Positions 2,944-63,400 of a stretch of DNA of 64,000 bases are shown here, one piece after another (the stretch's first letter is position 1; each line of letters opens with the position of its first letter). The stretch is taken from NCBI GenBank assembly GCA_965112735.1, contig OZ218964.1, forward strand, positions 1,984,001 through 2,048,000, read 5' to 3'. The translations under genes and the position numbers were made by a program. The notes beneath the pieces were generated by a model. The model had not been told where the DNA came from and searched no databases. It saw nothing but the letters and a program-made list of their open reading frames with translations. Source of the DNA: Phaeosaccion multiseriatum (lineage: Eukaryota; Protista; Ochrophyta, other classes).

Positions 2944-3416
2944 TGGGTGGGAAAGAAAAGAAGAGTTCCGGCACGCAACACCGTGGAGACTGTCGGCACG
3001 CAACACCAGACACAGTCTCCCTAGCTCTTCCTCCCTCTTCCACGAGGATCCCGGCTCGCAACACCAGGCGGATCCCCTTGGCCAACACAAGCGCTCTGTC
3101 CGGGCCCAGGACAAGAGGCTCGCTTTCCACCACACCAGTATCTACTCTCCTCCTTGACAGTGTGCTCCACTCTTCCTGGGCTCTGTCTCCGCCGCCTCAG
3201 TAAGTGACAGCACACGCCAAGGTCTCTCCTCTTCTGAAAAATCTAAATTCCCTGCTTCACTGACATACTGTACATCTCCCCAGAGGGGACCCCTCCCTTG
3301 GGGCGGTACCAAGCACCTACGCTGACGCTTCGCCCTGCTGGCTCCCATGTCTCCCACCTCTTCCTCGTCTCTGTTCCGCGAGAAACAAAGTTCCGTTGCT
3401 GCGCTGCTGAACAGGC
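2944..3416 (-). mobile_element. Solo A2 split-direct repeat of the Ngaro-like family (non-autonomous type, UUGCG hairpin class)
   Basis: Matches the A repeat from 'gggaaagaaaagaagagttcc' to 'gctgctgaacaggc'. It is preceded by 'tgggtggg' from the A2-B2 spacer, which identifies it as A2. Confidence 0.9.
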
Positions 3417-6270
3417 TATTTGCCAGGCACAAACACCTCAAACGAGGCAGTTGCTGGTCTTGATCTGCCCGCGCTGGGCGCTACTACAGCACAGTGGGCC
3501 TACCCGACACACTACGACGCCACAACGAAGCCAAGTCGGGCATGGAGTGGCCTCAAAATGCCCAATCTGGCCCTTGCATGGCTGGACCTAAATTCAGCAT
3601 TTATTAGGTAAAGACAACCCAAACAAGGCAGTTGCTGGCTTCGATATGCCCGTGCGGGGTGCTAGCTTCACACTAATGGCCCAACCAACACACTGCATCC
3701 CCACAACGAAGCCGAGTCGGGCCTGGAGTGGCCTCAAAATGCCCCATGTGGCCCTTGGCTGGACACAAAATCGGTATTTGCAAGGCACAAACACCCCAAA
3801 CGAGGCAGTTGCTGAGCTCGATATGCCCGCGCTATGCACTACATCAGCGCAACAGGCCTAACCAACACACTACAGGGCCACAACGAAGCCGAGTCGGGCA
3901 TGGAGTGGCCTAAAAATGCCCAATCTGACCCTTGGCTGGACCCAAAACCAGCATTTGCGAAGTAAACACACCCCAAACGAGGCAGTTGCTGGTTATGATA
4001 TGCCCGCGCCGGGCACTGGCTCAGCACAATAGGCCTAACCAACACACTACATGCCCATAACAAAGCCAAGCCGGGCATGGAGTGACCTCAAAATGCCCAA
4101 TCTGACCCTTGGCTGGACCCAAAACCGGAATTTGCCAGACACGAACACCTCAAACGAGGCAGTTGCTGGTCTTGATCTGCCCGCGCTGTGCGCTACTACA
4201 GCACAGTGGGCCTACCCGACACACTACGACGCCACAACGAAGCCAAGTCGGGCATGGAGTGGCCTCAAAATGCCCAATCTGGCACATGGCTGGACCCAAA
4301 ACCGGAATTTGCGAGGAACACACACCCCAAACGAGGCAGTTGCTGGTCTTGATCTGCCCGCGCTGTGCGCTATTACAGCACAGTGTGCCTACCCAACACA
4401 CTACGACGCCACAACGAAGCCAAGTCGGGCATGGAGTGGCCTCAAAATGCCCAATCTGGCCCTTGCATGGCTGGACCTAAATTCAGCATTTATTAGGTAA
4501 AGACAACCCAAACAAGGCAGTTGCTGGCCTCGATATGCCCGCGCGGGGTGCTAGCTTCACTCTAATGGCCCAACCAACACACTGCATCCCCACAACGAAG
4601 CCGAGTCAGGCCTGGAGTGGCCTCAAAATGCCCAATGTGGCCCTTGGCTGGACACAAAATCGGTATTTGCAAGGCACAAACACCCCAAACGAGGCAGTTG
4701 CTGAGCTCGATATGCCCGCGCTATGCACTAGATCAGCGCAACAGGCCTAACCAACACACTACATCCCCACAACGAAGCCGAGTCGGGCATGGAGTGGCCT
4801 CAAAATGCCCAATCTGACCCTTGGCTGGACCCAAAACCAGCATTTGCGAAGTAAACACACCCCAAACGAGGCAGTTGCTGGTTATGATATGCCCGTGCCG
4901 GGCACTGGCTCAGCACAATAGGCCTAACCAACACACTACATGCCCATAACAAAGCCAAGTCGGGCATGGAGTGACCTCAAAATGTCCAATCTGACCCTTG
5001 GCTGGACCCAAAACCGGAATTTGCCAGACACAAACACCTCAAACGAGGCAGTTGCTGGTCTTGATATGCCCGCGCCGAGCACTGGCTCAGCACAATAGGC
5101 CTAACCAACACACTACATGCCCATAACGAAGCCAAGTCGGGCATAGAATGGCCTCAAAATGCCCAATCTGGCACATGGCTGGACCCAAAACCGGAATTTG
5201 CCAGGCACAAACAACCCAAACGAGGCAGTTGCTGGTCTTGATATGCCCGCGCCGGGCACTGGCTCTGCACAATAGGCCTAACCAACACACTACATGCCCA
5301 CAACGAAGCCAAGTCGGGCATAGAATGGCCTCAAAACGCGCAATCTGGCACATGGCTGGACCCAAAACCGGCATTTGCCAGGCACAAACAACCGAAACGA
5401 GGCAGTTGCTGGTCTTCATATGCCCGCGCCGGGCACTGGCTCTGCACAATAGGCCTAACCAACACACTACATGCCCACAACGAAGCCAAGTCGGGCATAG
5501 AATGGCCTCAAAACGCGCAATCTGGCACATGGCTGGACCCAAAACCGGAATTTGCCAGGCACAAACACCCCAAACGAGGCAGTTGCTGAGCTCGATATGC
5601 CCGCGCTATGCACTACATCAGCGCAACAGGCCTAACCAACACACTACAGGGCCACAACGAAGCCGAGTCGGGCATGGAGTGGCCTCAAAATGCCCAATCT
5701 GACCCTTGGCTGGACCCAAAACCAGCATTTGCGAAGTAAACACACCCCAAACGAGGCAGTTGCTGGCCTTGATATGCCCGCGCCGGGCACTGGCTCTGCA
5801 CAATAGGCCTAACCAACACACTACATGCCCATAACAAAGCCAAGCCGGGCATGGAGTGACCTCAAAATGCCCAATCTGACCCTTGGCTGGACCCAAAACC
5901 GGAATTTGCCAGACACGAACACCTAAAACGAGGCAGTTGCTGGTCTTGATCTGCCCGCGCTGTGCGCTACTACAGCACAGTGGGCCTACCCGACACACTA
6001 CGACGCCACAACGAAGCCAAGTCGGGCATGGAGTGGCCTCAAAATGCCCAATCTGGCACATGGCTGGACCCAAAACCGGAATTTGCGAGGAACACACACC
6101 CCAAACGAGGCAGTTGCTGGTCTTGGTCTGCCCGCGCTGTGCGCTATTACAGCACAGTGGGCCTACCCAACACACTACGACGCCACAACGAAGCCAAGTC
6201 GGGCCTGGAGTGGCCTCAAAATGCCCAATCTGGCCCTTGCATGGCTGGACCTAAATTCAGCATTTATTTT

Positions 6271-9200
6271 CGCGCCGTCGCGGCGCTCGGGCGAAGGTGG
6301 GAAGCCAGTGAGAGGCCTCCTCCCTTCAGTCGTAGGCGAGGGCCCGGGAGATGTCCGACTCCCGCTCCAAGGCGTCGCAGTATGCAAGCTGAGGACTATC
6401 CACATCCACGCCGTAGCCGGCTGTTCGAGGCCAAGAGGAATAGGGCTGGACTCCCAAGTGGCCACCTGCTCCGCAGGTGGAGAGGTCGTGGACCAGGGGT
6501 AGCTAACGTTGGGGGAAGGACTCATCATTAGTAGGGGGGGGCAGTCCCGTGAGGGACTCCCACCTTGGGAGCGCAGAGCGCCTCCAAGGGGGCCGCCTCC
6601 ATGGAGGGAGGCGGGCACCGGGTTTCGGATGTAGTGGAGCTTGGGGTGCCACCGCAGTGAGCACCCCAAGTCCCGCTTCACCCCCATAATGTATGAGTAT
6701 CTAAAACTAAAACTAAGACTGAGGGTGGGTGGGTGGGAAAGAAAAGAAGAGTTCCGGCACTCAACACCGTGGACACTGTCGGCACTCAACACCAGACACA
6801 GTCTCCCTATCTCTCCTTCCCTCGCCCACGAGGACCCCGGTACTCAACACCAGGCGGGTCCCCTTGGCCGACACAAGCGCTCTGTCCGGGCCCAGGACAA
6901 GAGGCTCGCTTTCCACCACACCAGTATCTACTCTCCTCCTTGACAGTGTGCTCCACTCTTCCTGGGCTCTGTCTCCGGCGCCTCAGTAAGTGACAGCACA
7001 CGCCAAGGTCTCTCCTCTTCTGAAAAATCTAAATTCCCTGCTTCACTGACATACTGTACATCTCCCCAGAGGGGACCCCCCCCCTTGGGGCGGTACCAAG
7101 CACCTACGCTGACGCTTCGCCCTGCTGGCTCCCATGTCTCCCACCTCTTCCTCGTCTCTGTTCCGCGAGAAACAAAGTTCCGTTGCTGCGCTGCTGAACA
7201 GGCTTTCGCGCCGTCGCGGCGCTCGGGCGAAGGTGGGAAGCCAGTGAGAGGCCTCCTCCCTTCAGTCGTAGGCGAGGGCCCGGGAGATGTCCGACTCCCG
7301 CTCCAAGGCGTCGCAGTATGCAAGCTGAGGACTATCCACATCCACGCCGTAGCCGGCTGTTCGAGGCCAAGAGGAATAGGGCTGGACTCCCAAGTGGCCA
7401 CCTGCTCCGCAGGTGGAGAGGTCGTGGACCAGGGGTAGCTAACGTTGGGGGAAGGACTCATCATTAGTAGGGGGGGGCAGTCCCGTGAGGGACTCCCACC
7501 TTGGGAGCGCAGAGCGCCTCCAAGGGGGCCGCCTCCATGGAGGGAGGCGGGCACCGGGTTTCGGATGTAGTGGAGCTTGGGGTGCCACCGCAGTGAGCAC
7601 CCCAAGTCCCGCTTCACCCCCACCCATCCGAGTACCCACCGGTGCGCTGCGAGGGTGCAGCAGCACCTGCCCCAGCCTAGTCGGGAGCCCACTCTCCCGA
7701 TCGTAGTCGGCCGGTACACAAAACACAAAGATACACAAACATTCATACGCACACAGACAAAATAATACACATACAGGGGCAACAGTAGACACAGACGCAC
7801 ACCAGTACACACACACATACAAACACCCGCCGCGTGTACCGGTGTAGGGCTGCTGGTGCTGTTGCCAAGGGCTGCGCTCCCCGCTGCTGGGGGAGGAATG
7901 ATGGCGAGGGAGGAGCCGCTGGTGTCGCCACGGGCAGATTCAGTGTCCTTTGAAGAGGTCCCTTCGCACGCCCCCTGCTGACCATCACACACCCCCCACT
8001 CGCTTGGGATGGTGTGCTGGGGGGGGCGAGCCACTGAGCGAAATACACTGCGCAGTCCTCTGGCACGGCGGGTGGAAGCAGCAAAGCGCGCCCAAACCAG
8101 CAAATTCGGATTCTTTTCGGAATCACAGATCCAAAAGTGTCCATATATCCAACCCCTGTAGAAAAGCCGAAAATGCCCTCACAGAAGCGCTCATGTTTTC
8201 CGCTCCAAGCTCTTCGAACATCAACTCGTAGAAGTTACCCTTCTGCACACGCCGTACCAAGACCACTCTGCGGCGATTCCAACCGTCCGCCGTGGACTTC
8301 CGCTGTACCAGCTGAGCAATACAGCGAATGCCAAACACCTCGGTGCTGCGGGCCCGAAAAATGAACAAGTCCGATATCTCAAGCGCGGCGGCACCAATCC
8401 CTCGACCACCGAGCACGATAGCAAGAGGGTAGTCCATCCATACTACCGGAAGTAAGTCGTGCAAGCAGAGCGAGCCACAAGCCCTGTTCTCTCCCATCCT
8501 CCATGTTCACACCGCTCACGAGCCCCAACGCCGAAAAAACCATCACCTTCTCTTCTGCATCACAGGCAGGCCCCGACTTCCACTCCATAGCTGTTGTGAA
8601 CGACCAAACATCATGCTTCCGCCGTCCATTACAGATAAGTAGCCAGATTGCTCAATGCCCCAATTTCCTTCAGCACCGGACGACGTACATCGCCGTACAC
8701 TCCGTAGACGGTCACCAAACGCTGCCGTACCTCCCGAAATGTGAGTACCGTACACTCCCAATGCCGCCTTCCAATTCTCAATTCTCCCTCGTATGCTGTG
8801 CCTCTCTTGTCGCCCATCGGTTCGCTGTTATGGCCACAGGTCCCATATCCGCTCCACACGCAAACTCGAGGCGCCAACCACGATCAAAGGGCTCTCCGGT
8901 TCCTTCCAACAGCCCGAATAGCTGCCTTCGCATCCATGCTGCCACCTTTGACGCTCGTACTATTTGCTTTGCTGTTGCTGTTTGTCCTGAGAGCTGAGCC
9001 TCCATCGGACCCCCCCCCTCCCCCTCCCATGCGTTCGAGATGGTGAGGGAGGTACAGCTGTAGTCCGTCTCCTTCCCTTCGCCGCTCCTCGGCCCGATAT
9101 GTCTCTCGGGTGTAGCTGCCGGAGGTGAGCCGTGCGAGCTCCCGTATCGAAGGTCAGCTACGCCCCCACCCATCCAGAGAGACTGCAGGCAAGCTCAGTG

Positions 9201-10299
9201 GCGACCACGTACGCCTCCTTCTGGCCATACTGCTGTTGTAGGTGGGAGACACTCCAACAACAAGGGAGGTACACGTAAACACGCAGACGTACACAAACAT
9301 TCACAGGCACACAGATATAGACAAAGGCACAATACAGGGACACCAGCACCCACAAACGCACACTAGCACACACAGACGCAGACCAGCACACACAGATACA
9401 AACACACATCGTGTGTAGGGGCAGTGACCACGGCTGCTGTTGCCTAGGACTGCCCCGCCCGCCGTTGAGGGCCGGAATGGCGAGGGATGAGCCGCTGTTG
9501 TCACCGCGCGCAGAGCCAGCCTCCTTTGCGGAGGAGGCGCATATTCGCACGCCAAACACAGGAAATACGCACCCTACACACAGAAACACCGTCTGGACAT
9601 ACACACACAAACATACAGACAAACACCTGGAAGAGCTAAGGGGCCTGCCGTCACCCGGGAGCCCCTTTCGTCTCGTAAAAAGACAAAAAATGCCGTGGAC
9701 CACACCCCCCAAACCTTGGGCCACGGGAGAGAGGAGAGGGCGGAGAGATGAGTAGGGCGTCGGCCTCAACACCGGACGCGGATCCTACGGCGATACCAGC
9801 AAGGAAGAAAGGGCGAAGAGGGCAAAAGGCGCCGGCACTCAACACCGGGGAGGCGGTCGGCACTCAACACCAGACACCGCTCCTAAGCCGTAGAGCCCCA
9901 CAACACCGGCAAAGGGAAAGAAAAGAAGAGTTCCGGCACTCAACACCGTGGACACTGTCGGCACTCAACACCAGACACAGTCTCCCTATCTCTCCTTCCC
10001 TCGCCCACGAGGACCCCGGTACTCAACACCAGGCGGGTCCCCTTGGCCGACACAAGCGCTCTGTCCGGGCCCAGGACAAGAGGCTCGCTTTCCACCACAC
10101 CAGTATCTACTCTCCTCCTTGACAGTGTGCTCCACTCTTCCTGGGCTCTGTCTCCGGCGCCTCAGTAAGTGACAGCACACGCCAAGGTCTCTCCTCTTCT
10201 GAAAAATCTAAATTCCCTGCTTCACTGACATACTGTACATCTCCCCAGAGGGGACCCCCCCCCTTGGGGCGGTACCAAGCACCTACGCTGACGCTTCGC
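6271..10299 (-). mobile_element. Non-autonomous Ngaro-like element NA-1 (A1-internal-B1-A2-spacer-B2), with A1 5'-truncated
   Basis: B2 6271-6685, A2 6735-7203, ttt junction, B1 7207-7621, internal region ~2.3 kb, A1 9914-10299. About 100 bp of the outer A1 and ~125 bp of adjacent satellite are missing. Confidence 0.92.
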
Positions 10300-12458
10300 T
10301 GCTGCGTGGAGTGGCCTCAAAATGCCCAATGTGGCCCTCGGCTGGACACAAAATCGGTATTTGCAAGGCACAAACACCCCAAACGAGGCAGTTGCTGAGC
10401 TCGATATGCCCGCGCTATGCACTACATCAGCGCAACAGGCCTAACCAACACACTACATCCCCACAACGAAGCCGAGTCGGGCATGGAGTGGCCTCAAAAT
10501 GCCCAATCTGACCCTTGGCTGGACCCAAAACCAGCATTTTGCGAAGTAAACACACCCCAAACGAGGCAGTTGCTGGTTATGATATGCCCGCGCCGGGCAC
10601 TGGCTCAGCACAATAGGCCTAACCAACACACTACATGCCCATAACAAAGCCAAGCCGGGCATGGAGTGACCTCAAAATGCCCAATCTGACCCTTGGCTGG
10701 ACCCAAAACCGGAATTTGCCAGACACGAACACCTCAAACGAGGCAGTTGCTGGTCTTGATCTGCCGGCGCTGTAGGCTACTACAGCACAGTGGGCCTACC
10801 CGACACACTACGACGCCACAACGAAGCCAAGTCGGGCATGGAATGGCCTCAAAATGCCCAATTGGCACATGGCTGGACCCAAAACCGGAATTTGCGAGGA
10901 ACACACACCCCAAACGAGGCAGTTGCTGGTCCTGATCTGCCCGCGCTGTGCGCTATTACAGCACAGTGGGCCTACCCAACACACTACGACGCCACAACGA
11001 AGCCAAGTCGGGCATGGAGTGGCCTCAAAATGCCCAATCTGGCCCTTGCATGGCTGGACCTAAATTCAGCATTTATTAGGTAAAGACAACCCAAACAAGG
11101 CAGTTGCTGGCTTCGATATGCCCGCGCGGGGTGCTAGCTTCACTCTAATGGCCCAACCAACACACTGCATCCCCACAACGAAGCCGAGTCAGGCCTGGAG
11201 TGGCCTCAAAATGCCCAATGTGGCCCTTGGCTGGACACAAAATCGGTATTTGCAAGGCACAAACACCCCAAACGAGGCAGTTGCTGAGCTCGATATGCCC
11301 GCGCTATGCACTAGATCAGCGCAACAGGCCTAACCAACACACTACATCCCCACAACGAAGCCGAGTCGGGCATGGAGTGGCCTCAAAATGCCCAATCTGA
11401 CCCTTGGCTGGACCCAAAACCAGCATTTGCGAAGTAAACACACCCCAAACGAGGCAGTTGCTGGTTATGATATGCCCGTGCCGGGCACTGGCTCAGCACA
11501 ATAGGCCTAACCAACACACTACATGCCCATAACAAAGCCAAGTCGGGCATGGAGTGACCTCAAAATGTCCAATCTGACCCTTGGCTGGACCCAAAACCGG
11601 AATTTGCCAGACACAAACACCTCAAACGAGGCAGTTGCTGGTCTTGATATGCCCGCGCCGAGCACTGGCTCTGCACAATAGGCCTAACCAACACACTACA
11701 TGCCCATAACGAAGCCAAGTCGGGCATAGAATGGCCTCAAAATGCCCATTCTGGCACATGGCTGGACCAAAAACCGGAATTTGCGAGGCACAAACAACCC
11801 AAACGAGGCAGTTGCTGGTCTTGATATGCCCGCGCCGGGCACTGGCTCTGCACAATAGGCCTAACCAACACACTACATGCCCACAACGAAGCCAAGTCGG
11901 GCAAAGAATGGCCTCAAAACGCGCAATCTGGCACATGGCTGGACCCAAAACCGGCATTTGCCAGGCACAAACAACCGAAACGAGGCAGTTGCTGGTCTTG
12001 ATATGCCCGCGCCGGGCACTGGCTCTGCACAATAGGCCTAACCAACACACTACATGCCCATAACAAAGCCAAGCCGGGCATGGAGTGACCTCAAAATGCC
12101 CAATCTGACCCTTGGCTGGACCCAAAACCAGCATTTGCGAAGTAAACACACCCCAAACGAGGCAGTTGCTGGCCTTGATATGCCCGCGCCGGGCACTGGC
12201 TCTGCACAATAGGCCTAACCAACACACTACATGCCCACAACGAAGCCAAGTCGGGCATAGAATGGCCTCAAAACGCGCAATCTGACCCTTGGCTGGACCC
12301 AAAACCGGAATTTGCCAGACACAAACACCTCAAACGAGGCAGTTGCTGGTCTTGATCTGCCCGCGCCGGGCACTGGCTCAGCACAACAGGCCTAACCAAC
12401 ACACTACATGCCCACAACGAAGCCAAGTCGGGCATAGAATGGCCTCAAAATGCCCAAT

Positions 12459-12979
12459 AAAAGAAAAAACCTTTGGCTAGACGAGAGCACAATCTTGCTA
12501 GCGGGTCAGGCCAAGGTTCTCAAACTTCTACTAGATGCGTGTGCGTAGCGCAAGCCCTTGCGACAGTTAGCATTGGGGGCACCTCTTGTGTTTGCGACAG
12601 TTAGCATGACACAGGTAAGCACACAGCATCCTCACCCTCACAAGGGAAGCAGTCGGGCCCTACTGCAATCCTTGCTTTCCTACACCACAGTCTCTACTCT
12701 CCTCCCTGCTTGCACACACCCCCGCGTACCTGCTCTCGATCTCCTTCAATCACGGTAGGGTGGTGAGTACAGCAGGGCTCCTCCTCTTCTGAGCTCCTCG
12801 AGCAGCAGAAAACACTGCTTCCATCTGCTACCATATATATTTCTATCCTAAAAACCCCCCTCGGGGTCCACACACGCACCCACCCTCCACACCCTACCCC
12901 TCGGCTCTCAAGACCCTGTTTATCCGTCGACTCCACTCTGCGAGAACAGAACTTCCGTGGCTCCGCTGCTGAAGCAGCG
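12459..12979 (-). mobile_element. 521-bp A-repeat-like relic of a related YR-retrotransposon family, copy 1
   Basis: Its end 'gcgagaacagaacttccgtggctccgctgctgaagcagc' resembles the A terminus 'gcgagaaacaaagttccgttgctgcgctgctgaacaggc'. It shares the internal blocks 'tctactctcctcc' and 'ggctcctcctcttct'. It is inserted into satellite 'cccaat^ctgg'. Confidence 0.75.
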
Positions 12980-37772: not shown

Positions 37773-37775
37773 TTT

Positions 37776-38175: not shown

Positions 38176-38178
38176 CTT

Positions 38179-46900: not shown

Positions 46901-47168
46901 TTCCTGGACTCTGTCTCCGCCGCCTCAGTAAGTGACAGCACACGCCAAGGTCTCTCCTCTTCTGAAAAATCTAAATTCCCTGCTTCACTGACATAATGTA
47001 CATCTCTCCAGAGGGGACCCCCCCCCTTGGGGCGGTACCAAGCACCTACGCTGACGCTTCGCCCTGCTGGCTCCCATGTCTCCCACCTCTTCCTCGTCTC
47101 TGTTCCGCGAGAAACAAAGTTCCGTTGCTGCGCTGCTGAACAGGCTGTTGCTGCGCTGCTGAACAGGC
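43981..47168 (-). mobile_element. Non-autonomous element NA-4 (A-internal-B) fused directly upstream of autonomous copy 1, with a 23-bp terminal duplication
   Basis: A 46677-47145 and B 43981-44380, joined by ttt to the A at 43977. 'gttgctgcgctgctgaacaggct' is repeated at 47124-47146 and 47147-47169. Confidence 0.93.
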
Positions 47169-51700: not shown

Positions 51701-51970
51701 CCCCCCCTACTAATGATGAGTCCTTCCCCCAACGTTAGCTACCCCTGGCCCACGACCTCTCCACCTGCGGAGCAGGTGGCCACTTGGGAGTCCAACCCTA
51801 TTCCTCTTGGCCTCGAACAGCCGGCTACGGCGTGGATGTGGATAGTCCTCAGCTTGCATACTGCGACGCCTTGGAGCGGGAGTCGGACATCTCCCGGGCC
51901 CTCGCCTACGACTGAAGGGAGGAGGCCTCTCACTGGCTTCCCACCTTCGCCCGAGCGCCGCGACGGCGCG
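48793..51970 (+). mobile_element. Non-autonomous element NA-5, short form A-internal-B
   Basis: Reverse complement of the NA-2 core. A 48793-49261, B ~51556-51970. The satellite rejoins as gacccaa aaa | aac cggcatt. Confidence 0.95.
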
Positions 51971-54900
51971 AACCGGCATTTGCCAGGAACACACACCCCA
52001 AACGAGGCAGTTGCTGGTCTTGATCTGCCCGCGCCGGGCACTGGCTCAGCACAATACGTCAAACTGACACACTACATCCCCACAACGAAGCCAAGTCGGG
52101 CATAGAATGGCCTCAAAATGCCCAATCTGGCACATGGCTGGACCCAAAACCGGAATTTGCCAGACACAAACACCTCAAACGAGGCAGTTGCTGGTCTTGA
52201 TATGCCCGCGCCGGGCACTGGCTCTGCACAATAGGCCTAACCAACACACTACATCCCCACAACAAAGCCATGTCGGGCATGGAATGGCCTCAAAACGCCC
52301 AATCTGGCACATGGCTGGACCCAAAACCGGAATTTGCAAGGCACAAACACCCAAAACGAGGCAGTTGCTGAGCTCGATATGCCCGCGCTATGCACTAGAT
52401 CAGCGCAACAGGCCTAACCAACACACTACAGGGCCACAACGAAGCCGAGTCGGGCATGGAGTGGCCTCAAAATGCCCAATCTGACCCTTGGCTGGACCCA
52501 AAACCAGCATTTGCGAAGTAAACACACCCCAAACGAGGCAGTTGCTGGCCTTGATATGCCCGCGCCGGGCACTGGCTCTGCACAATAGGCCTAACCAACA
52601 CACTACATGCCCATAACAAAGCCAAGTCGGGCATGGAGTGGCCTCAAAATGCCCAATCTGGCCCTTGCATGGCTGGACCTAAATTCAGCATTTATTAGGT
52701 AAAGACAACCCAAACAAGGCAGTTGCTGGCCTCGATATGCCCGCGCGGGGTGCTAGCTTCACTCTAATGGCCCAACCAACACACTGCATCCCCACAACGA
52801 AGCCGAGTCAGGCCTGGAGTGGCCTCAAAATGCCCAATGTGGCCCTTGGCTGGACACAAAATCGGTATATGCAAGGCACAAACACCCCAAACGAGGCAGT
52901 TGCTGAGCTCGATATGCCCGCGCTATGCACTAGATCAGCCCAACAGGCCTAACCAACACACTACATCCCCACAACGAAGCCGAGTCGGGCATGGAGTGGC
53001 CTCAAAATGCCCAATCTGACCCTTGGCTGGACCCAAAACCAGCATTTTGCGAAGTAAACACACCCCAAACGAGGCAGTTGCTGGTTATGATATGCCCGCG
53101 CCGGGCACTGGCTCAGCACAATAGGCCTAACCAACACACTACATGCCCATAACAAAGCCAAGCCGGGCATGGAGTGACCTCAAAATGCCCAATCTGACCC
53201 TTGGCTGGACCCAAAACCAGCATTTGCGAAGTAAACACACCCCAAACGAGGCAGTTAATTGCTGGCCTTGAGATGCCCGCGCCGGGCACTGACTCTGCAC
53301 AATAGGCCTAACCAACACACTACATGCCCATAACAAAGCCAAGTCGGGCATGGAGTGGCCTCAAAATGCCCAATCTGACCCTTGGCTGGACCCAAAACCG
53401 GAATTTGCCAGACACAAACACCTCAAACGAGGCAGTTGCTGGTCTTGATATGCCCGCGCCGAGCACTGGCTCAGCACAACAGGCCTAACCAACACACTAC
53501 ATGCCCATAACGAAGCCAAGTCGGGCATAGAATGGCCTCAAAATGCCCAATCTGGCACATGGCTGGACCCAAAACCGGAATTTGCCAGGCACAAACAACC
53601 CAAACGAGGCAGTTGCTGGTCTTGATATGCCCGCGCCGGGCACTGGCTCTGCACAATAGGCCTAACCAACACACTACATGCCCACAACGAAGCCAAGTCG
53701 GGCATAGAATGGCCTCAAAACGCGCAATCTGGCACATGGCTGGACCCAAAACCGGCATTTGCCAGGAACACACACCCCAAACGAGGCAGTTGCTGGTCTT
53801 GATCTGCCCGCGCCGGGCACTGGCTCAGCACAATACGTCAAACTGACACACTACATCCCCACAACGAAGCCAAGTCGGGCATAGAATGGCCTCAAAATGC
53901 CCAATCTGGCACATGGCTGGACCCAAAACCGGAATTTGCCAGGCACAAACAACCCAAACGAGGCAGTTGCTGGTCTTGATACACTCGCGCCGGGCACTGG
54001 CTCTGCACAATAGGCCTAACCAACACACTACATCCCCACAACAAAGCCAAGTCGGGCATGGAATGGCCTCAAAACGCCCAATCTGGCACATGGCTGGACC
54101 CAAAACCGGAATTTGCAAGGCACAAACACCCAAAACGAGGCAGTTGCTGAGCTCGATATGCCCGCGCTATGCACTAGATCAGCGCAACAGGCCTAACCAA
54201 CACACTACAGGGCCACAACGAAGCCGAGTCGGGCATGGAGTGGCCTCAAAATGCCCAATCTGACCCTTGGCTGGACCCAAAACCAGCATTTGCGAAGTAA
54301 ACACACCCCAAACGAGGCAGTTGCTGGCCTTGATATGCCCGCGCCGGGCACTGGCTCTGCACAATAGGCCTAACCAACACACTACATGCCCATAACAAAG
54401 CCAAGTCGGGCATGGAGTGGCCTCAAAATGCCCAATCTGGCCCTTGCATGGCTGGACCTAAATTCAGCATTTATTAGGTAAAGACAACCCAAACAAGGCA
54501 GTTGCTGGCCTCGATATGCCCGCGCGGGGTGCTAGCTTCACTCTAATGGCCCAACCAACACACTGCATCCCCACAACGAAGCCGAGTCAGGCCTGGAGTG
54601 GCCTCAAAATGCCCAATGTGGCCCTTGGCTGGACACAAAATCGGTATTTGCCAGGCACAAACAGCCGGTTCAGCAGCGCAGCAACGGAACTTTGTTTCTC
54701 GCGGAGCAGAGACGAGGGAGTGGGCGGGAAGCAACGAGGGCCCGAGGGGCAGTGCCGCGGGCGGCCCAGCCCCGAGGGGAGCGGCCTCTCCCCCGGGGAA
54801 CATATTACTTTTGTACCAAACTTAGGAATTTAGAAGAGGAGGAGCCTTGGAGTGTGTCGCCGCCTACTGAAGCAACGGAGACAGTGCACAGGTAAGGCGG

Positions 54901-54999
54901 GACACACTGCCAAGGAGGAGAGGTAGATACTGGTGTAGTGGAAAGCGAGCCTCAGTCCTGGGCCCGGACAGAGAGCTTCGTGTTGGCCAAGGGGACCCG

Positions 55000-55202
55000 C
55001 CTGGTGTTGAGTACCGGGGTCCTCGTGGGCGAGGGAAGGAGAGATAGGGAGACTGTGTCTGGTGTTGAGTGCCGACAGTGTCCACGGTGTTGAGTGCCGG
55101 AACTCTTCTTTTCTTTCCCTTTGCCGGTGTTGTGGGGCTCTCCGGCTAAGGAGCGGTGTCTGGTGTTGAGTGCCGACCGTCTCCCCGGTGTTGAGTGCCG
55201 GC
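55000..55202 (+). promoter_or_regulatory. Array of five leader hairpins GGUG-UUGAG-UGCC (candidate packaging signal)
   Basis: Five copies of ggtgttgagt(g/a)cc with complementary flanks upstream of gag. The array is retained in the non-autonomous copies. Confidence 0.5.
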
Positions 55203-55365
55203 GCCTCCTGCCCTCTTCGCTCTTTCCACACCACCAGCCTATCGCAGTAGGACCCCCCCTGACGTCCTACTACCCTTTCCGCCTTCTCCTCTCTCTCCCG
55301 TGGCCCAATTCTTTGGGGGGTGTGGCCCACGTGCACGCCACCAGACAACCAAAGCTTTTCCTACC

Positions 55366-57111
55366 ATGTCACCTCTCGGCACTTCCTCGGACGCCAAGAG
55401 GCTCCTTCGGGTCCCTGACCACCGTCCCAACAACGGAGAAGCAGCGTTCGTCATCTACAAGGACAAGTCACCTAAGGCCTTTTTTCGGCCAGCAATTCTG
55501 GTTCGCTCAGGGAACAGCCACTACATGGAGGCCATCTACCACGTCCTCTCCCTGCCCACGGACGACATCATCTACGCTCAAGACGTCTGGGAGGAGTGGC
55601 TTGCGGTGGCCTCCACCAACCCTCCGAGTGAACTCTCTTCTCTGCCCACTTCACCGGCAGAGGAATCCGTTCGCTGGCACCTCGTGACCGCTCCAACGTT
55701 CACAGACCTCGCCACGGTAGGCGTGGTAGCCCAATCGGCGACTTCCGCTTCACACCTCCACACCCTCTTCCCTACCACTTCTACCACGTCTCTTCCTGCG
55801 GGCCCCGCTCGCCTTCACCCGGAGCCCAAGGTTCAGACATCTACAACGGCGGCACTCCGCACCGCCTCCTCTCCACCCCACCTGCCTCCCCAACCTTCCT
55901 CCCGTTCGCCTTCAGCCCCCCTCTCGGCGGCGGCCCTTCTCGCGATTCAGGAGGAGGAAGCAGCTGAGCGCGATCATCGTCGTTTCCTTCGAGATCGTGA
56001 GCGCCAACGCGCGGAAGCAGAGGATAAGCTCGAGTTAGAGAGACGTACAGCGGAGACTGAGCTGGCACAGCTTCGCCTCGCGGAGGCCAAGGCTACCGCG
56101 GCCACCTCCGCCACCACGACCCGCGAAGACAAAGGTAAATCCGTCGCCCCATTAGCTATCCTACTTAACGGTGGCAAGGTCTCTCACGTTCGTCGCCAAG
56201 GAGCTCATGGCGTCTCGGCCGCAGCGCAGACGCTCATGGGCCCGCGAGACGTCGCGTTCGACCCAAAAGCGATCACTGGGCTCCTTCAAGGACGGTTTGG
56301 CATCCCCGATGGTTTTGAGCTCCAATGCTGCACCCCTCGCGAGCGCACCACGGCGCTTAACGCCGCTCTCCGCTTGGAGCACTCGGACCTCCAGCGCTCG
56401 AGCGCAGAAGCAGGGGGCGCAGTCGTCGCTCTCCCTACGATCGCCCGCCCGCTCCCTCGCTCTTTCGCTGCTCTCCGGACCACCGTCGACAACTTCGTCA
56501 GCGTCATCCGCCTGGTCTACCCCGAGAACACCAACTTTATCGACGAGTTCGACGAGTTCTCTACGACCCTCGACGAACTCTGCACACGCAGCGACTCCTC
56601 GGCGCTAGGGATGCCTCCCGACATCCTGTGCTCCACCACCAACGCTCTGCTCGACCTCCACTCCACCACCTCAGCTAAGTGGCTCAGCTGCCAAAGCCTC
56701 CCGCCCGCTTCCTACGACACCGCTCCTGTCTTCTCTCTTTACGCTCTGCTCGACCACTACGCTTCCCCAGCGGCTCTCATCGTCCAGCGTGGTCTCCTCA
56801 CGTGCCTCCTGCGTGATGTGGACTTGGGGGGGACACGCAACGGCAATGGAGGGGGAGGAGCACGTGGGAATGGCGCCCTCAAGCCCTGTATCACCCTACT
56901 CAAGACCCAGTCTTGCACTGAAGCTTTGTCTGGCTCATGCTCTTTCGCGCCCTGTGCCCCTGGATCCCTCTCTACTCCCCAGAAGAACTCAGCCGTCTCT
57001 CACCTTAAGAGCGGCATGCGGGATCCCAAAGCCCCTACCCCTGCGGAGAGGTCCCACGCCACCAACATCGCTCTTCGCCTTGGCGGCCTTCCAACGGTAC
57101 CGTGGTGGTGA
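55366..57111 (+). CDS. gag: Gag-like ORF1 (581 aa from ATG)
   Basis: Homologue of 41538-43262, with ATG at 55366. It is divergent at the N-terminus and in the C-terminal Cys region. Confidence 0.8.
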   Translation: MSPLGTSSDAKRLLRVPDHRPNNGEAAFVIYKDKSPKAFFRPAILVRSGNSHYMEAIYHVLSLPTDDIIYAQDVWEEWLAVASTNPPSELSSLPTSPAEESVRWHLVTAPTFTDLATVGVVAQSATSASHLHTLFPTTSTTSLPAGPARLHPEPKVQTSTTAALRTASSPPHLPPQPSSRSPSAPLSAAALLAIQEEEAAERDHRRFLRDRERQRAEAEDKLELERRTAETELAQLRLAEAKATAATSATTTREDKGKSVAPLAILLNGGKVSHVRRQGAHGVSAAAQTLMGPRDVAFDPKAITGLLQGRFGIPDGFELQCCTPRERTTALNAALRLEHSDLQRSSAEAGGAVVALPTIARPLPRSFAALRTTVDNFVSVIRLVYPENTNFIDEFDEFSTTLDELCTRSDSSALGMPPDILCSTTNALLDLHSTTSAKWLSCQSLPPASYDTAPVFSLYALLDHYASPAALIVQRGLLTCLLRDVDLGGTRNGNGGGGARGNGALKPCITLLKTQSCTEALSGSCSFAPCAPGSLSTPQKNSAVSHLKSGMRDPKAPTPAERSHATNIALRLGGLPTVPWW

Positions 57112-57166
57112 GGGGGCCCTGGTACGGTGTCACCTCTCATCGTGCCTTCAGGGATTGGGGGAGAGG
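57109..57166 (+). promoter_or_regulatory. Predicted stop-codon readthrough signal (UGA, G5 spacer, stem-loop/H-type pseudoknot)
   Basis: CCCUG/CAGGG and GUACGGUG/CAUCGUGC form a stem. Loop CCUCU is complementary to downstream AGAGG. The same fold is available at 41483-41540 on the minus strand. Confidence 0.6.
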
Positions 57167-59484
57167 GCCCTGCAGGGAACGAGGGCCGGCCCCCACGCCG
57201 CCCTCCGGAGCACACGTTGGTGAGCAGCTTGGCTCCTCGAGGGTTGGAACGGCCGCCCCGTCGGCCCCCCGAAGTCCCGTGCTACCAAAGGCCTGCTGAT
57301 CGGGCGTGGGTGGAGCGGACATTCCTCAGTGACGCAGCATTTGGACGCCGCGCCAATGGGGAGGAAAGTTTTTCATCTTCCGTCGTCGAGCACCATGGCC
57401 GTGGCCTCATCGCCTTCCACGGAGACTTGGGGGCCTACCTTGCTTGGCTCGGCCCTCCCTTCGCTCCCACCTACTTCGACGCCGCACGGATTGAGCGCTA
57501 CTTCGGCAACGTCCCTTTATGGTCACATCTCCATGAGCTTACCACCAACGGTGCCACCGTCCCTGGCACCTTCTTCTCCGTCCCCTCCGCCCAACGAGAC
57601 GCGTACGGGAACCACCCCTCGGGACGAGAGCATCCTACGGTGCTGGAGGACCTCGCTGTGACTAGCTCGTTGGAGGGGAAAGTGTTGCTGGTACCGGTGG
57701 AGCTGGCGCGCCAGGTTTTTCCGGACTTGCGCCCCAACCCCCTAGGCCTCCTCCAAAAGAAGAGCGGCGAGTGGCGCCTCATCACCGACCCCACCTTCGC
57801 CTCTTCCGACGGAGAGCCTACGTCCAACAGCCAGACCGACAAGGAGGCTTTAGTCAACATGAAGGGCCACGACGCTTTAACGGAATTCCTCACTTACTTG
57901 GTTCGGCGGAGCCTTTCTCTCGACCCCTCCGAGTGGGATATTCTCATCTCCAAGACCGACGTCAGCTCTGCGTTCAACTGGATCTTCTACTCCCGCCAGG
58001 CCGGCCTCTGGCCTTTCTTCTGCTCGGTCGTTGGAGCAGTGTGCGTTTTCGACTTACGCTGCGGATTTGGCCCTTGCTCTAGCCCCTCTTTCTACTTCGT
58101 CTTGGCCCAGAGTCTCGTCGCCGTCATCTGCGCTACGGCTCTCACCACTCATCTCGTCATCCCTGCTTGTTGCAACGGCCTCATCCCGGGCATGGAGCTG
58201 ATTGATGTGGAGGAGCAACGGCCAATCCAACGGCGACAGTTACGGGGTACTCCGACGGCGGTTGGGGAAATTCCAGAGCACCATGCTGTGGTTCACGGCG
58301 ACGACCTCAGTGCCGCCAAAGCAGCTCGACGGGGCCTCCCCTCCGCCGAGCGGGCCGCCCCCCTCCTCCAGCTCAGCAGAATCATCACGGCGATGCACTA
58401 CAACCTCTTCGGCTGGCCTGGGGAAAATCCACATGTTTCCTCTTGCATCAATCTGGCGAAGCATGGGAAGGAGGGCCCCTGGCGTTCCGTGCAGCGAGTT
58501 TTGGGCATCATGATCGACACGGAGGCCGGCACTGCCTCTCTGCGTCCCGACAAGCTCGCCGAACTGCACGCTCTGTTGGCGGAGTGGCCTCCAACTCGCA
58601 CCGTTTGCACGCTGAAGGAGCTTCAATCTTTTATCGGCAAGCTCCGCAGCATCAGCTTCTGCATTCGCCCCGGCCGTTACATGCTTCGTCAGCTCACCAA
58701 TCTCACCAGAGGCTGTGGTACGGGTCGTTTTACCGGGCGTACGAAGCTCTTTCTGGACGACGACGCCCTCTTCGACCTCCAGCGCTGGCGGCATCTTATC
58801 TGCGTGTGGGGGGTGAAAGATCCCTCTATCCTGGTGTGCCCTTTGGAGCTACTAGTCCCTCGCCAACCGGACGTTTGCCTCGACGGAGACGCGTCTGACT
58901 GGGGAGGGGGAATTGTATGGGCAGAGGCCTCCATGTTCGCACAGTGGCGCTGGCCTGCGGAGGTAGTAGCCCGACACCATACGGTCCCGAAATTGATCAC
59001 TGTAAACGATTTGGAGATGGGCGTGATCGTTACGGGCCTCTGCACCTTCTGGCTCCAACATCCAACAGCTTTCGACCTCTCAGCGGTGCTAGTGCGTGGC
59101 GACAACACCAGCAGCTTGTCTTGGGTAGAGAACCAGGGGGCCCCCAACAGCTCCATCAGCAACGGCTTGGCAGGGCTGGTGGGCCTCCTGGAGATCGGTG
59201 CTCGGTGCAGCCTCGACACCGTCCATGTCCCCGGACGCATCAACCTTATCCCCGATGACCTCAGCCGTGATTGGATTGAAAATCTCATCGGAACTGACCG
59301 CTCCTCCCCCATTGCCCCTCACCTACAGCCCCTCACTCAGTGGACGCAAATCATGCCGGACTCAATCGTTTTGGACGCGGTCTTCTCAGCTCTGCTCGGG
59401 CAGCCGCAGCAAGCGGTCTCCGCCCTAGCACCTTGGATCGCTACTCATCGGTCCAACGTCAATGGATGGAGTTCTGCCAACTAG
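57112..59484 (+). CDS. pol: Reverse transcriptase-RNase H, in frame with gag behind TGA 57109-57111
   Basis: Same RT and RNase H motifs as copy 1. The first in-frame ATG is only at 57859. Confidence 0.95.
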   Translation, partial: GGPGTVSPLIVPSGIGGEGPAGNEGRPPRRPPEHTLVSSLAPRGLERPPRRPPEVPCYQRPADRAWVERTFLSDAAFGRRANGEESFSSSVVEHHGRGLIAFHGDLGAYLAWLGPPFAPTYFDAARIERYFGNVPLWSHLHELTTNGATVPGTFFSVPSAQRDAYGNHPSGREHPTVLEDLAVTSSLEGKVLLVPVELARQVFPDLRPNPLGLLQKKSGEWRLITDPTFASSDGEPTSNSQTDKEALVNMKGHDALTEFLTYLVRRSLSLDPSEWDILISKTDVSSAFNWIFYSRQAGLWPFFCSVVGAVCVFDLRCGFGPCSSPSFYFVLAQSLVAVICATALTTHLVIPACCNGLIPGMELIDVEEQRPIQRRQLRGTPTAVGEIPEHHAVVHGDDLSAAKAARRGLPSAERAAPLLQLSRIITAMHYNLFGWPGENPHVSSCINLAKHGKEGPWRSVQRVLGIMIDTEAGTASLRPDKLAELHALLAEWPPTRTVCTLKELQSFIGKLRSISFCIRPGRYMLRQLTNLTRGCGTGRFTGRTKLFLDDDALFDLQRWRHLICVWGVKDPSILVCPLELLVPRQPDVCLDGDASDWGGGIVWAEASMFAQWRWPAEVVARHHTVPKLITVNDLEMGVIVTGLCTFWLQHPTAFDLSAVLVRGDNTSSLSWVENQGAPNSSISNGLAGLVGLLEIGARCSLDTVHVPGRINLIPDDLSRDWIENLIGTDRSSPIAPHLQPLTQWTQIMPDSIVLDAVFSALLGQPQQAVSALAPWIATHRSNVNGWSSAN

Positions 59485-60470
59485 TGGAGGTACCACCTCT
59501 ACTTTTCGGAGACGATGACCCCCGGAACTCGGAAATCTTCATGGCTTTTCTGGCGTGGTGTCGTGAGGAGAAGGGCAATAAGGCGGCGACGTTGGAGGGG
59601 AAGGGACCGGCGGTGAATGCTCTGTTTTCTCGGGAAGGGATGAAAGGCCCCGCGGTGGGCAAGCAGGTGCAGTTGGTTCTCCGGAGTTACAGACTCACCG
59701 ATGGCGACTCCATCCCGCAGCTTCCGGTGGATGTAGCTCTTCTAGAGGCTACCAGAGGCGTGCTCAGCACGGAGGGGAGGAAGGGTACCATGCTCTGGGC
59801 GCTCATCCGGTTGGGGTGGTTTTTTCTGATGCGTGTGAGCGAGTTTGCCCCCTCCAATACGAGGGGGAGCGCAGACGTGCGCTACATCCTAACCCCTCTC
59901 GATGTCTCGTTCACAGACGCCTCGAACCGGGCCTACTCAGGGAGAGAAGCCCTTGCAGCCGTCGGCCGAGGGGTGCGGATGCTGCGCGTGACTTTGGCTT
60001 TCACAGGCAGCAAGACAGATGCGTTCAGGAAGGGAGAGGCACGTACGCACCAGAGGACAGGCGCCCCCACGCTTTGCCCGGTACTTGCTGCTGTGGACGC
60101 ACTCCGCTGCCACTTCGGCGGAGAGCAGGTACGCCCTCGAGAAGTTGGGGAAGGGCACACTCTCCTCGCCTCCTACACCGACGAGACTGGGCGAAGGACA
60201 TCCGTCACTTCCCACCAAGTCAGCAGAGCCCTCAAGGCTGGGGCAACGAGGGCTGGGAGGGACTCCAACCGGATCAGCGCTCACTCCCTGCGGAGTGGAG
60301 GTGCTACAGCCCTTGCAGCGGGCGGAGCAGACTGGCGCGCACTCCAGTTTTGGGGGCGCTGGTCGTCGACGACGGCTTTCCAGTACGCCCACAGGACCGT
60401 CCAGGAGGCTCTTGGCTGGGCGGGCCGCATGCTGACGGCAGATACGACTCCCCCGCAGGTACACGGATGA
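59340..60470 (+). CDS. Tyrosine recombinase (YR); true start uncertain
   Basis: R-K-HxxR-W-Y catalytic set is intact. Only about four amino-acid differences from copy 1. Confidence 0.95.
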   Translation: MDANHAGLNRFGRGLLSSARAAAASGLRPSTLDRYSSVQRQWMEFCQLVEVPPLLFGDDDPRNSEIFMAFLAWCREEKGNKAATLEGKGPAVNALFSREGMKGPAVGKQVQLVLRSYRLTDGDSIPQLPVDVALLEATRGVLSTEGRKGTMLWALIRLGWFFLMRVSEFAPSNTRGSADVRYILTPLDVSFTDASNRAYSGREALAAVGRGVRMLRVTLAFTGSKTDAFRKGEARTHQRTGAPTLCPVLAAVDALRCHFGGEQVRPREVGEGHTLLASYTDETGRRTSVTSHQVSRALKAGATRAGRDSNRISAHSLRSGGATALAAGGADWRALQFWGRWSSTTAFQYAHRTVQEALGWAGRMLTADTTPPQVHG

Positions 60471-63400
60471 AAGGGGGTGAAGCGGGGCGTAGGGCACTCA
60501 CCATGGTGACTTCCCTACCCTCCGCTACATCCGAAATGCAGTGTCCGCCCTCTGTGATAGAAGCGGCCCTCTTCTCAGACCAACTGGCCTCCGAAGAAGG
60601 AGCCCCTCACAGGGCTGCACTCTCCTAATGAAGAGTCCTTCCCCCAACATCCCCAGCCTTTGACTCACCGGCGCCCCATTCACAACTGACGACTGTGTGG
60701 ATGAGGAGCCCTACCACTTGCTCACTCACAGCTGGCGACGCCCTGGATGTTGAGGTCCGTCACTTCCCGCGACGACACTGAGGAGCACCTGTTCTTCCCC
60801 CGGCTCTCGCCGACGACAAGGGAGGAGGCCCCTCACTGCATTCCCGCCCCCACCCGAGCGCCACGACGGCGCGAAACCCCAAACGAGGCAGTTGCTGAGC
60901 TCGATATGCCCGCGCTATGCACTAGATCAGCGCAACAGGCCTAACCAACACACTACATCCCCACAACGAAGCCGAGTCGGGCATGGAGTGGCCTCAAAAT
61001 GCCCAATCTGACCCTTGGCTGGACCCAAAACCAGCATTTTGCGAAGTAAACACACCCCAAACGAGGCAGTTGCTGGTTATGATATGCCCGCGCCGGGCAC
61101 TGGCTCAGCACAATAGGCCTAACCAACACACTACATGCCCATAACAAAGCCAAGCCGGGCATGGAGTGACCTCAAAATGCCCAATCTGACCCTTGGCTGG
61201 ACCCAAAACCGGAATTTGCCAGACACGAACACCTCAAACGAGGCAGTTGCTGGTCTTGATATGCCCGCGCTGTGCGCTACTACAGCACAGTGGGCCTACC
61301 CGACACACTACGACGCCACAACGAAGCCAAGTCGGGCATGGAATGGCCTCAAAATGCCCAATTGGCACATGGCTGGACCCAAAACCGGAATTTGTGAGGA
61401 ACACACACCCCAAACGAGGCAGTTGCTGGTCCTGATCTGCCCGCGCTGTGCGCTATTACAGCACAGTGGGCCTACCAAACACACTACGACGCCACAACGA
61501 AGCCAAGTCGGGCATGGAGTGGCCTCAAAATGCCCAATCTGGCCCTTGCATGGCTGGACCTAAATTCAGCATTTATTAGGTAAAGACAACCCAAACAAGG
61601 CAGTTGCTGGCCTCGATATGCCCGCGCGGGGTGCTAGCTTCACTCTAATGGCCCAACCAACACACTGCATCCCCACAACGAAGCCGAGTCAGGCCTGGAG
61701 TGGCCTCAAAATGCCCAATGTGGCCCTTGGCTGGACACAAAATCGGTATTTAAAGGCACAAACACCCCAAACGAGGCAGTTGCTGAGCTCGATATGCCCG
61801 CGCTATGCACTACATCAGCGCAACAGGCCTAACCAACACACTACATCCCCACAACGAAGCCGAGTCGGGCATGGAGTGGCCTCAAAATGCCCAATCTGAC
61901 CCTTGGCTGGACCCAAAACCAGCATTTGCGAAGTAAACACACCCCAAACGAGGCAGTTGCTGATTATGATATGCCCGTGCCGGGCACTGGCTCAGCACAA
62001 CAGGCCTAACCAACACACTACATGCCCATAACAAAGCCAAGTCGGGCATGGAGTGCCCTCAAAATGCCCAATCTGACCCTTGGCTGGACCCAAAACCGGA
62101 ATTTGCCAGACACAAACACCTCAAACGAGGCAGTTGCTGGTCTTGATCTGCCCGCGCCGGGCACTGGCTCAGCACAACAGGCCTAACCAACACACTACAT
62201 GCCCACAACGAAGCCAAGTCGGGCATAGAATGGCCTCAAAATGCCCAATCTGGCACATGGCTGGACCCAAAACCGGAATATGCGAGGAACACACACCCCA
62301 AACGAGGCAGTTGCTGGTCTTGATCTGCCCGCGCTGTGCGCTATTACAGCACAGTGGGCCTACCCAACACACTACATGCCCACAACGAAGCCGAGTCGGG
62401 CCTGGAGTGGCCTCAAAATGCCCAATCTGACCCTTGGCTGGAATCAAAACCAGCATTTGCGAAGTAAACACACCCCAAACGAGGCAGTTGCTGGCCTTGA
62501 TATGCCCACGCCGGGCACTGGCTCAGCACAACAGGCCTAACCAACACACTACATGCCCATAACAAAGCCAAGTCGGGCATGGAGTGGCCTCAAAATGCCC
62601 AATCTGACCCTTGGCTGGACCCAAAACCGGAATTTGCCAGACACAAACACCTCAAACGAGGCAGTTGCTGGTCTTGATATGCCCGCGCCGGGCACTAGCT
62701 CAGCACAATAGGCCTAACCAACACACTACATCCCCACAACGAAGCCAAGTCGGGCATGGAATGGCCTCAAAACGCCCAATCTGGCACATGGCTGGACCCA
62801 AAACCGGCATTTGCCAGGCACAAACAACCGAAACGAGGCAGTTGCTGGTCTTGATATGCCCGCGCCGGGCACTGGCTCAGCACAACAGGCCTAACCAACA
62901 CACTACATGCCCACAACGAAGCCAAGTCGGGCATAGAATGGCCTCAAAATGCCCAATCTGGCACATGGCTGGACCCAAAACCGGAATTTGCCAGGCACAA
63001 ACAACCCAAACGAGGCAGTTGCTGGCCTTGATATGCCCGCGCCGGGCACTGGCTCTGCACAATAGACGTAACCAACACACTACATCCCCACAACAAAGCC
63101 AAGTCGGGCATGGAATGGCCTCAAAACGCGCAATCTGGCACATGGCTGGACCCAAAACCGGCATTTGCCAGGAACACACACCCCAAACGAGGCAGTTGCT
63201 GGTCTTGATCTGCCCGCGCTGTGCGCTATTACAGCACAGTGGGCCTACCCAACACACTACGACGCCACAACGAAGCCAAGTCGGGCATGGAGTGGCCTCA
63301 AAATGCCCAATCTGGCCCTTGCATGGCTGGACCTAAATTCAGCATTTATTAGGTAAAGACAACCCAAACAAGGCAGTTGCTGGCCTCGATATGCCCGCGC

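Follow-up and report, generated by a model that had tools for sequence, protein, structure and literature searches.

Ngaro-type retrotransposons and a cargo-bearing partner nearly confined to probable centromeric satellite arrays of Phaeosaccion multiseriatum

Introduction

In retrotransposons, confinement to centromeres is well documented for long terminal repeat (LTR) and long interspersed nuclear element (LINE) types. Among elements with a tyrosine recombinase (YR) the habit is rare and known mainly from the satellite-less DIRS-1 clusters of Dictyostelium. DIRS-1 carries inverted terminal repeats, an internal complementary region, and a methyltransferase domain; in VIPER the YR precedes the reverse transcriptase and RNase H (RT/RH), and SIRE is dispersed. 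Here, a family of Ngaro-type YR retrotransposons and its non-autonomous partner are described from a 64,000-nucleotide stretch of Phaeosaccion multiseriatum (GenBank assembly GCA_965112735.1, contig OZ218964.1), hereafter the window. The assembly scanned comprises 67.1 Mb in 22 contigs (C1 to C22), and the window is C15:1,984,001-2,048,000. These elements probably form a guild living almost exclusively in chromosome-specific arrays of ~177- to 186-bp satellites, one array per chromosome, which are most likely regional centromeres.

DIRS-1 of Dictyostelium discoideum is a YR retrotransposon concentrated at centromeres (PMC3950715, PMC7192593). Its clusters themselves form the centromere without a satellite, whereas the Phaeosaccion elements sit inserted in satellite DNA and have split direct repeats. 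Plant CRM and ATHILA and ECR-1 of Ectocarpus are, as is probable for the present family, retroelements that colonize and are largely confined to centromeric DNA (PMC12477816; 10.64898/2026.09.17.752431), but they possess a DDE integrase, often a chromodomain, and target-site duplications (TSDs), whereas the Phaeosaccion family uses a YR and leaves no TSD. Pfam, the protein atlas, and the low-confidence model of the gag-like protein revealed no chromatin-reader domain in the family. YR elements have been noted briefly in chordate centromere arrays (preprint 10.64898/2026.09.17.752431).

Ngaro elements occur in stramenopiles (PMC12477816, PMC8547959). In Cafeteria burkhardae they have solo AB units, and some types strongly prefer one kind of target DNA, that of virophages (PMC8547959). 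The Ngaros of Cafeteria and Ectocarpus share with the present family the layout A1-[ORFs]-B1A2B2 (ORF, open reading frame), the order gag-RT/RH-YR, the lack of a methyltransferase, and solo AB units (PMC8547959, PMC12477816, PMC6681497). In comparison to Cafeteria, the family here prefers not virophage DNA but a satellite array at a single locus on each chromosome. A 48- to 52-nt A2-B2 spacer and a non-autonomous partner that is high in copy number and carries foreign cargo also set the family apart from Ngaro. SIRE of Trypanosoma cruzi consists of A2, ~30 unique bp, and B2 of VIPER (PMC6681497). The VIPER/SIRE pair is likewise a YR retroelement with split direct repeats and a short non-autonomous companion, and SIRE resembles the A-spacer-B units seen here (PMC6681497), whereas the main non-autonomous family of Phaeosaccion bears ~2 kb of unrelated cargo beyond the AB unit. 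A literature search turned up no account of a Ngaro-type guild confined to satellite DNA in which a non-autonomous partner carries cargo.

One satellite locus per chromosome

The whole assembly was searched with pol, YR, the non-autonomous unit, the autonomous 5' part, a 521-bp repeat, and the pol of a sister lineage as queries. Among the matches listed, a scope that holds for all copy positions and counts from these searches, element matches occupied one locus per contig on 15 contigs (C1 to C12 and C14 to C16), and a tally of match ranges gave the 15 loci a combined span of ~0.8 Mb (1.2% of the genome). Outside the clusters lay three places (C3 4.947 Mb, C14 1.433 Mb, and C1 6.466 Mb) and a decayed YR copy with 62% identity and internal stops (C1:2.917 Mb). 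The genome holds ~4 intact helpers, one sister autonomous lineage (62% pol identity) with intact copies on C12 and C7 at the same loci only, and ~35 copies of the parasitic partner. The initial annotation had proposed a restriction to the satellite, and this density comparison of the arrays with the rest of the genome agrees with it; the elements are clearly not equally dense outside the satellite. More distant YR/RT families gave weak matches scattered away from these loci, which shows that the clustering is no artefact of the search.

On all nine contigs checked (C2, C3, C4, C6, C7, C8, C10, C12, and C15), the clusters coincided with chromosome-specific satellites of 176 to 186 bp, namely, 177 bp on C2, 186 bp on C4, and 176/185 bp on C12, with a conserved core common to these and the C15 monomer. 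In satellite searches of the assembly, each variant was found only at the cluster locus of its own chromosome, and relatives at 66 to 84% identity were confined to the corresponding loci on C3, C6, C7, C8, C10, and C15. The conserved core pattern gave 1104 matches against 0 for its control, those listed all being on C2. On C15, the 177-bp array begins at window position 1714, runs in + orientation to 64000, interrupted by YR elements, and extends on the contig from 1,985,714 to ~2,051,200, ~3 kb past the window end, a domain of ~65 kb. Its 14 arrays in the window are all in + orientation, with within-array matches of 84 to 88%. Satellite accounts for 27.8 kb of the window, and comparison of the remaining blocks with each other assigned nearly all the remainder to one repeat family in seven blocks (2902-3417, 6240-10303, 21674-25806, 33012-35231, 36849-47169, 48792-51970, and 54664-60873).

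Non-autonomous copies that are 99 to 100% identical were found on C3, C4, C5, C12, and C15 in different satellite variants. Such young copies on several chromosomes favor targeting over passive retention. Integration could instead be random, with elements surviving only in the arrays since selection purges other insertions from a compact, gene-dense genome, and with low recombination aiding their build-up. The variable insertion sites within the monomer, the presence of both orientations, and the three places outside the clusters agree with this explanation. We nevertheless regard it as unlikely, as retention should leave some young copies elsewhere while the youngest copies, on different chromosomes, lie in the arrays, and the weak matches of other YR/RT families outside the clusters indicate that insertions elsewhere are tolerated. 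Active targeting is thus favored over selective retention from the distribution of copies, although not proven.

Independent insertions and their junctions in the window

The seven blocks correspond to seven distinct satellite junctions, each at a different monomer position. Two copies are in + orientation (monomer phases ~27 and 49/50) and five in - orientation (12/13, ~31, 33, ~37, and 172). An eighth event at phase 3/4 is a 521-bp relic, which the genome search traced to the sister YR family as its terminal repeat. After a single insertion it was co-amplified sevenfold with 9 to 10 monomers, mostly at 2122-bp spacing, into a ~2.1-kb higher-order unit (12459-29647, - strand; starts at 12459, 14581, 16702, 18824, 20949, 26830, and 29127). 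The copy at 21678-25792 sits within this higher-order array and is therefore younger than it. At least eight independent insertions in both orientations and at varied positions of the 177-bp satellite, as first proposed from the sequence, were thus recovered.

Removal of the element restored the satellite exactly in four window copies and at loci on C12 and C4, with no TSD and no loss of target bases. The lack of duplication or loss at the junctions is a prediction of conservative recombination, unlike that of DDE integrases. The flank upstream of the element was A-rich; on the four bases directly upstream of the A terminus, 34 of 56 bases were A over 14 independent junctions, compared to 12.5 expected, and none of 100,000 randomizations reached 34. 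From this flank, which echoes the element's own ...GAA|AGCC junction, we infer that strand exchange may require a short homology.

Spread by the dynamics of the satellite arrays themselves (segmental duplication, unequal exchange, and exchange between centromeres) in place of retrotransposition appears highly improbable. Such dynamics clearly did multiply the 521-bp relic, and the occurrence of tandem multimers and solo A-spacer-B units shows that the elements undergo recombination. However, the seven window copies each have a junction of their own with exact element ends, copies elsewhere are flanked by the satellite variant specific to their chromosome, and purifying selection acts on the coding regions. 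The young copies on several chromosomes in different satellite variants rule out spread by duplication alone.

Two copies in the window are autonomous and coding-intact. The intact autonomous copy at 54663-60875 (+ strand) has the A-ORFs-B form without A2-B2 and is precisely inserted at CACAAAC|ACCCC. The second lies in a composite at one satellite site without TSD (36847-47169, - strand), which comprises a non-autonomous unit (47146 to 43979, preceded by a 23-nt partial extra A at 47169-47147), an autonomous unit (43978 to 37774) with an A1 of the non-autonomous type, gag (43262 to 41538), pol (41537 to 39165), and YR (39351 to 38179), and then an autonomous-type A2 (37773 to 37301), the spacer, and B2 (37248 to 36847). 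B1 and B2 of this autonomous copy are 99.75% identical.

The other copies are of the non-autonomous type. The complete one at 21678-25792 (- strand) has the order A1-cargo-B1-A2-spacer-B2 without TSD. Another full copy at 6269-10303 (- strand) carries A1 at 9914-10299 (5'-truncated by ~84 bp), cargo at 7623-9913, B1 at 7207-7622, A2 at 6735-7204, spacer at 6687-6734, and B2 at 6269-6686. The copy at 48792-51972 (+ strand) has the A-cargo-B form without A2-B2 and is precisely inserted at CCCAAAA|CCGG. The copy at 33012-35231 (- strand) has an intact 5' (A) terminus and is 3'-truncated. The solo A2 remnant at 2944-3417 (- strand) has an intact A 5' terminus, followed by 5 nt of the A2-B2 spacer and then satellite.

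Coding capacity of the autonomous element

The autonomous element is 6.2 kb long, or 7.1 kb when A2-B2 is present, starts with AGCC..., ends with ...GGCGCGAA, and consists of an A repeat of ~470 bp, a leader, a gag-like ORF, an in-frame UGA, pol, YR, and a B repeat of ~400 bp. In the - strand autonomous copy, A2 follows B1 directly and is separated from B2 by a 52-nt spacer, giving the layout A1-[ORFs]-B1A2B2.

The gag-like ORF (55366-57111, + strand) encodes 581 amino acids from the first ATG and ends in a UGA in frame with pol, with a central coiled coil and a C-terminal Cys-x8-Cys-x7-Cys-x4-Cys motif. Pfam gave no significant match to the protein and the protein atlas nothing informative. 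Its AlphaFold model had a predicted local distance difference test score (pLDDT) of 37, with the coiled coil as the sole confident part. No chromatin-reader domain was found in the protein by Pfam or the protein atlas, the AlphaFold model being unusable and no fold search having been made with it, and such a module is neither supported nor excluded.

The pol frame (57112-59484, + strand, 790 codons) encodes reverse transcriptase and RNase H with motif A TDVSSAF, motif C HGDD, and RNase H residues D588, E630, and D659. An exhaustive HMMER search with pol recovered 1146 distant relatives, the best at 36% identity, among which the catalytic Asp and Glu are conserved, and the profile of these relatives matched the RT of human immunodeficiency virus type 1 (HIV-1) with an E value of 1e-6. 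The AlphaFold model of pol (pLDDT 83, predicted template modeling score 0.83) had as top PDB matches the RTs of cauliflower mosaic virus, foamy virus, Ty3, and HIV-1 (E values of 3e-10 to 2e-9 over ~600 to 700 aligned columns). A word-indexed homologue search found none with pol alone and one match, covering 3% of the query, with the profile of the relatives. In two cluster look-ups, the close pol relatives were all metagenomic proteins; the contig of the second-closest relative carries an ORF1, pol, and an overlapping YR in the same order, the YR being 29% identical. The RT/RH lineage has so far come almost only from metagenomes and is missed by standard Pfam screens.

The YR ORF (59297-60470, + strand) lies in the -1 frame relative to pol with a 187-nt overlap and matches Pfam Phage_integrase PF00589 above the curated cut-off (E value of 2.4e-6). 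The catalytic R, K, HxxR, W, and Y are present and all align with those of relatives, the nearest named ones being Phytophthora proteins at 33 to 35% identity. Apart from the YR, the proteins of the element gave in Pfam only a sub-threshold DUF3391 match (E value of 0.041).

The first Met of pol is at codon 250, and translation therefore needs read-through from gag across the single in-frame UGA at 57109-57111. Conserved YR residues start upstream of the first YR ATG, within the -1 overlap with pol (59297-59484). The arrangement of the frames suggests that gag, pol, and YR may be expressed by read-through followed by frameshifting. A 58-nt imperfect palindrome opens the B repeat right after a purine-rich tract (60475-60532) and could be a priming or processing signal.

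Assignment to the Ngaro type

The family is Ngaro-type by structural criteria and a putative member of the Ngaro clade. A YR stands in place of a DDE integrase. The RT/RNase H is of the retroviral/LTR class, judged by the profile of relatives, the AlphaFold model, and the catalytic residues. The ORF map shows the order gag, RT/RH, YR without a methyltransferase. The repeats are split direct repeats; in the window self-comparison, B1 and B2 of the copy at 6269-10303 were 100% identical over 419 bp and A1 and A2 over 386 bp, and in the copy at 21678-25792 the A pair reached 99.8% and the B pair 99.5%, while the copies at 48792-51972 and 54663-60875 lack A2-B2. Together with the lack of a TSD, these features agree with the architecture that the initial annotation had described as Ngaro-like.

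Features specific to three other types were not found. A PAT-like element should carry a methyltransferase domain, for which no match was found and pol has no room, as ~60 residues forming helices only lie beyond the last RNase H strand (up to residue 700). A DIRS-like element of the DIRS-1 type is contradicted by the lack of inverted terminal repeats, the sole inverted repeat near an end being the local palindrome at the start of B, and a VIPER-like one by the position of the YR downstream of RT/RH.

The non-autonomous partner

The non-autonomous A-cargo-B unit is 3.18 kb long and present in 5 copies in the window. Its nucleotides 1-577 and 623-693 (A and leader) are 83 to 84% identical to the autonomous element and parts of B 72 to 83%, the first ~40 and last ~25 nt are nearly identical between the two, and so is the 48- to 52-nt A2-B2 spacer. 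The remaining ~2 kb of the interior is unrelated to the autonomous element and non-coding (longest ATG ORF, 204 amino acids). The leader carries a conserved 14-nt motif, GGTGTTGAGTGCCG, in four copies per leader. The proposal that these copies keep the A/B termini, the leader, and the spacer while unrelated cargo replaces the ORFs was upheld; the leader hairpins proposed with it were not, as these are the four repeats of the 14-nt motif, and folding of the whole leader was no better than that of shuffled sequence (z of +0.86 and -0.64).

The common termini, leader motif, and spacer of the two families, together with the lack of ORFs, the greater number, and the near-identical copies across chromosomes on the side of the partner, fit a relationship of helper and non-autonomous partner. 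The partner would be mobilized in trans by the proteins of the autonomous element.

Part of the cargo (nucleotides 1390-2346, ~950 bp, window 50181-51137) is 87 to 88% identical to part of a different ~2- to 3-kb repeat, which resides in the centromere-like loci of at least 8 other contigs. Probably the non-autonomous element acquired its cargo from this other resident of the loci, or the reverse.

Public run X5, of unrecorded kind, contains contigs of the non-autonomous element (window 48801-52000) with a word depth of ~4000, compared to 20 to 56 for satellite contigs; in run X1, both kinds of contig had ~70 to 120. The depth in X5 could stem from strong expression, provided that X5 is RNA, or from an amplified element in another strain. 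Run X6, labelled as a different organism (B), yielded low-depth contigs mostly 94 to 99% identical to the non-autonomous element (window 48865-51360), which places the family in a related taxon or strain as well.

Selection and recent activity

Both autonomous copies of the window have open gag, pol, and YR frames, with protein identities of 98.4% in pol and 99.0% in YR, which bears out the earlier view of two coding-intact copies nearly identical in these genes. Between them, the ratio of nonsynonymous to synonymous substitution (dN/dS) was 0.20 for gag, 0.20 for pol, and 0.08 for YR. Two further intact pol copies were found by the genome search on C8 and C10. The identity of the whole element is 94% because gag (89% protein identity; dS of 0.28) and the A repeat differ. 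Given this divergence of gag next to nearly identical pol and YR, the copies are mosaic, which points to recombination between lineages.

Proposed integration cycle and rearranged forms

According to the published model for elements with split direct repeats, element RNA would be copied into cDNA, which would be closed into a circular intermediate at the B|A junction, ...GGCGCGAA|AGCC.... The YR would then recombine this junction with an A-rich spot of the satellite, giving a precise insertion with no target bases duplicated or lost. RT/RNase H would be made by read-through of the in-frame UGA and the YR from the overlapping -1 frame, and the partner, having kept the ends, leader motif, and spacer, would be copied in trans by these proteins. 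Homologous or YR-mediated exchange between A and B repeats may yield (A-int-B)n-A-spacer-B multimers, solo A-spacer-B units, copies without A2-B2, and the 10.3-kb chimera of non-autonomous and autonomous units.

Multimers of the (A-int-B)n-A-spacer-B form and repeated A-spacer-B units occur at the C12 and C4 loci. The B|A junction is present in contigs from four public runs, as tandem copies predict. At C4:177128-182160, one non-autonomous unit is followed by two A-spacer-B units in succession, and the flanking satellite flips its orientation across the cluster, which suggests an inversion between elements.

Target choice and centromere identity

That each chromosome has one internal array, with a monomer of nucleosome size, makes it plausible that the arrays are regional centromeres. 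A stronger proposal, which we put forward tentatively, is that the elements are actively guided to the CENH3 chromatin of satellite centromeres by the YR pathway, as an integrase-free convergent counterpart of CRM and ATHILA, and that two autonomous lineages and their parasitic partner reshape the arrays (new higher-order units, inversions, and tandem multimers). If true, centromere homing evolved also on a recombinase-based integration pathway. The loci would provide sequence markers for candidate centromeres of P. multiseriatum and a small natural system for the mutual remodeling of transposons and satellites.

Several points weigh against the picture of an active, centromere-bound guild. 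In comparison to Ngaro, the RT has diverged beyond the reach of Pfam RVT_1, which gives no match to pol, and motif C reads HGDD instead of YxDD in both the family and its sister, relatives having Y/F/H-x-DD; RT activity is assumed from conservation. Current activity is read from sequence identity; among the public runs none is recorded as RNA, and no empty-site allele was seen in the contigs from the four public runs. The many monomer positions and both orientations imply that the satellite sequence is not a strict recognition site, and because the host DNA in the loci is nearly all satellite, targeting by sequence and by chromatin are indistinguishable. A regional specificity, for example for chromatin, combined with a weak local preference for A-rich sites is more likely. 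Inspection of sequence beyond the window covered 200 kb, and centromere identity is read from position and repeat type.

The last point leaves room for a reading in which the biology of the elements is as described, the arrays are some other heterochromatic domain, and the true centromeres lie elsewhere. In its favor, no cluster was found on seven contigs (C13 and C17 to C22) among the matches listed, and the clusters on C3 and C4 lie within 200 kb of a contig end. Nevertheless, exactly one locus was found per contig on 15 contigs, the locus lies away from the contig ends on C2 (at 3.72 of 5.99 Mb) and on C12 (at 1.6 of 3.33 Mb), and the monomers are nucleosome-sized and chromosome-specific with higher-order structure, as is typical of regional centromeres; we therefore consider a non-centromeric domain doubtful and retain regional centromeres as the preferred identity of the arrays.

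Sequences bordering the C15 array

The segment immediately left of the C15 array (window 860-1713) recurs at or beside array edges on C4 (197.6 kb), C8 (1.2157-1.2164 Mb), C5, and C11, which suggests an older shared border element. Farther left, a word of ~40 to 57 nt at window 605-665 matches dozens of places across most larger contigs at 81 to 97% identity and resembles short dispersed words elsewhere in the genome.

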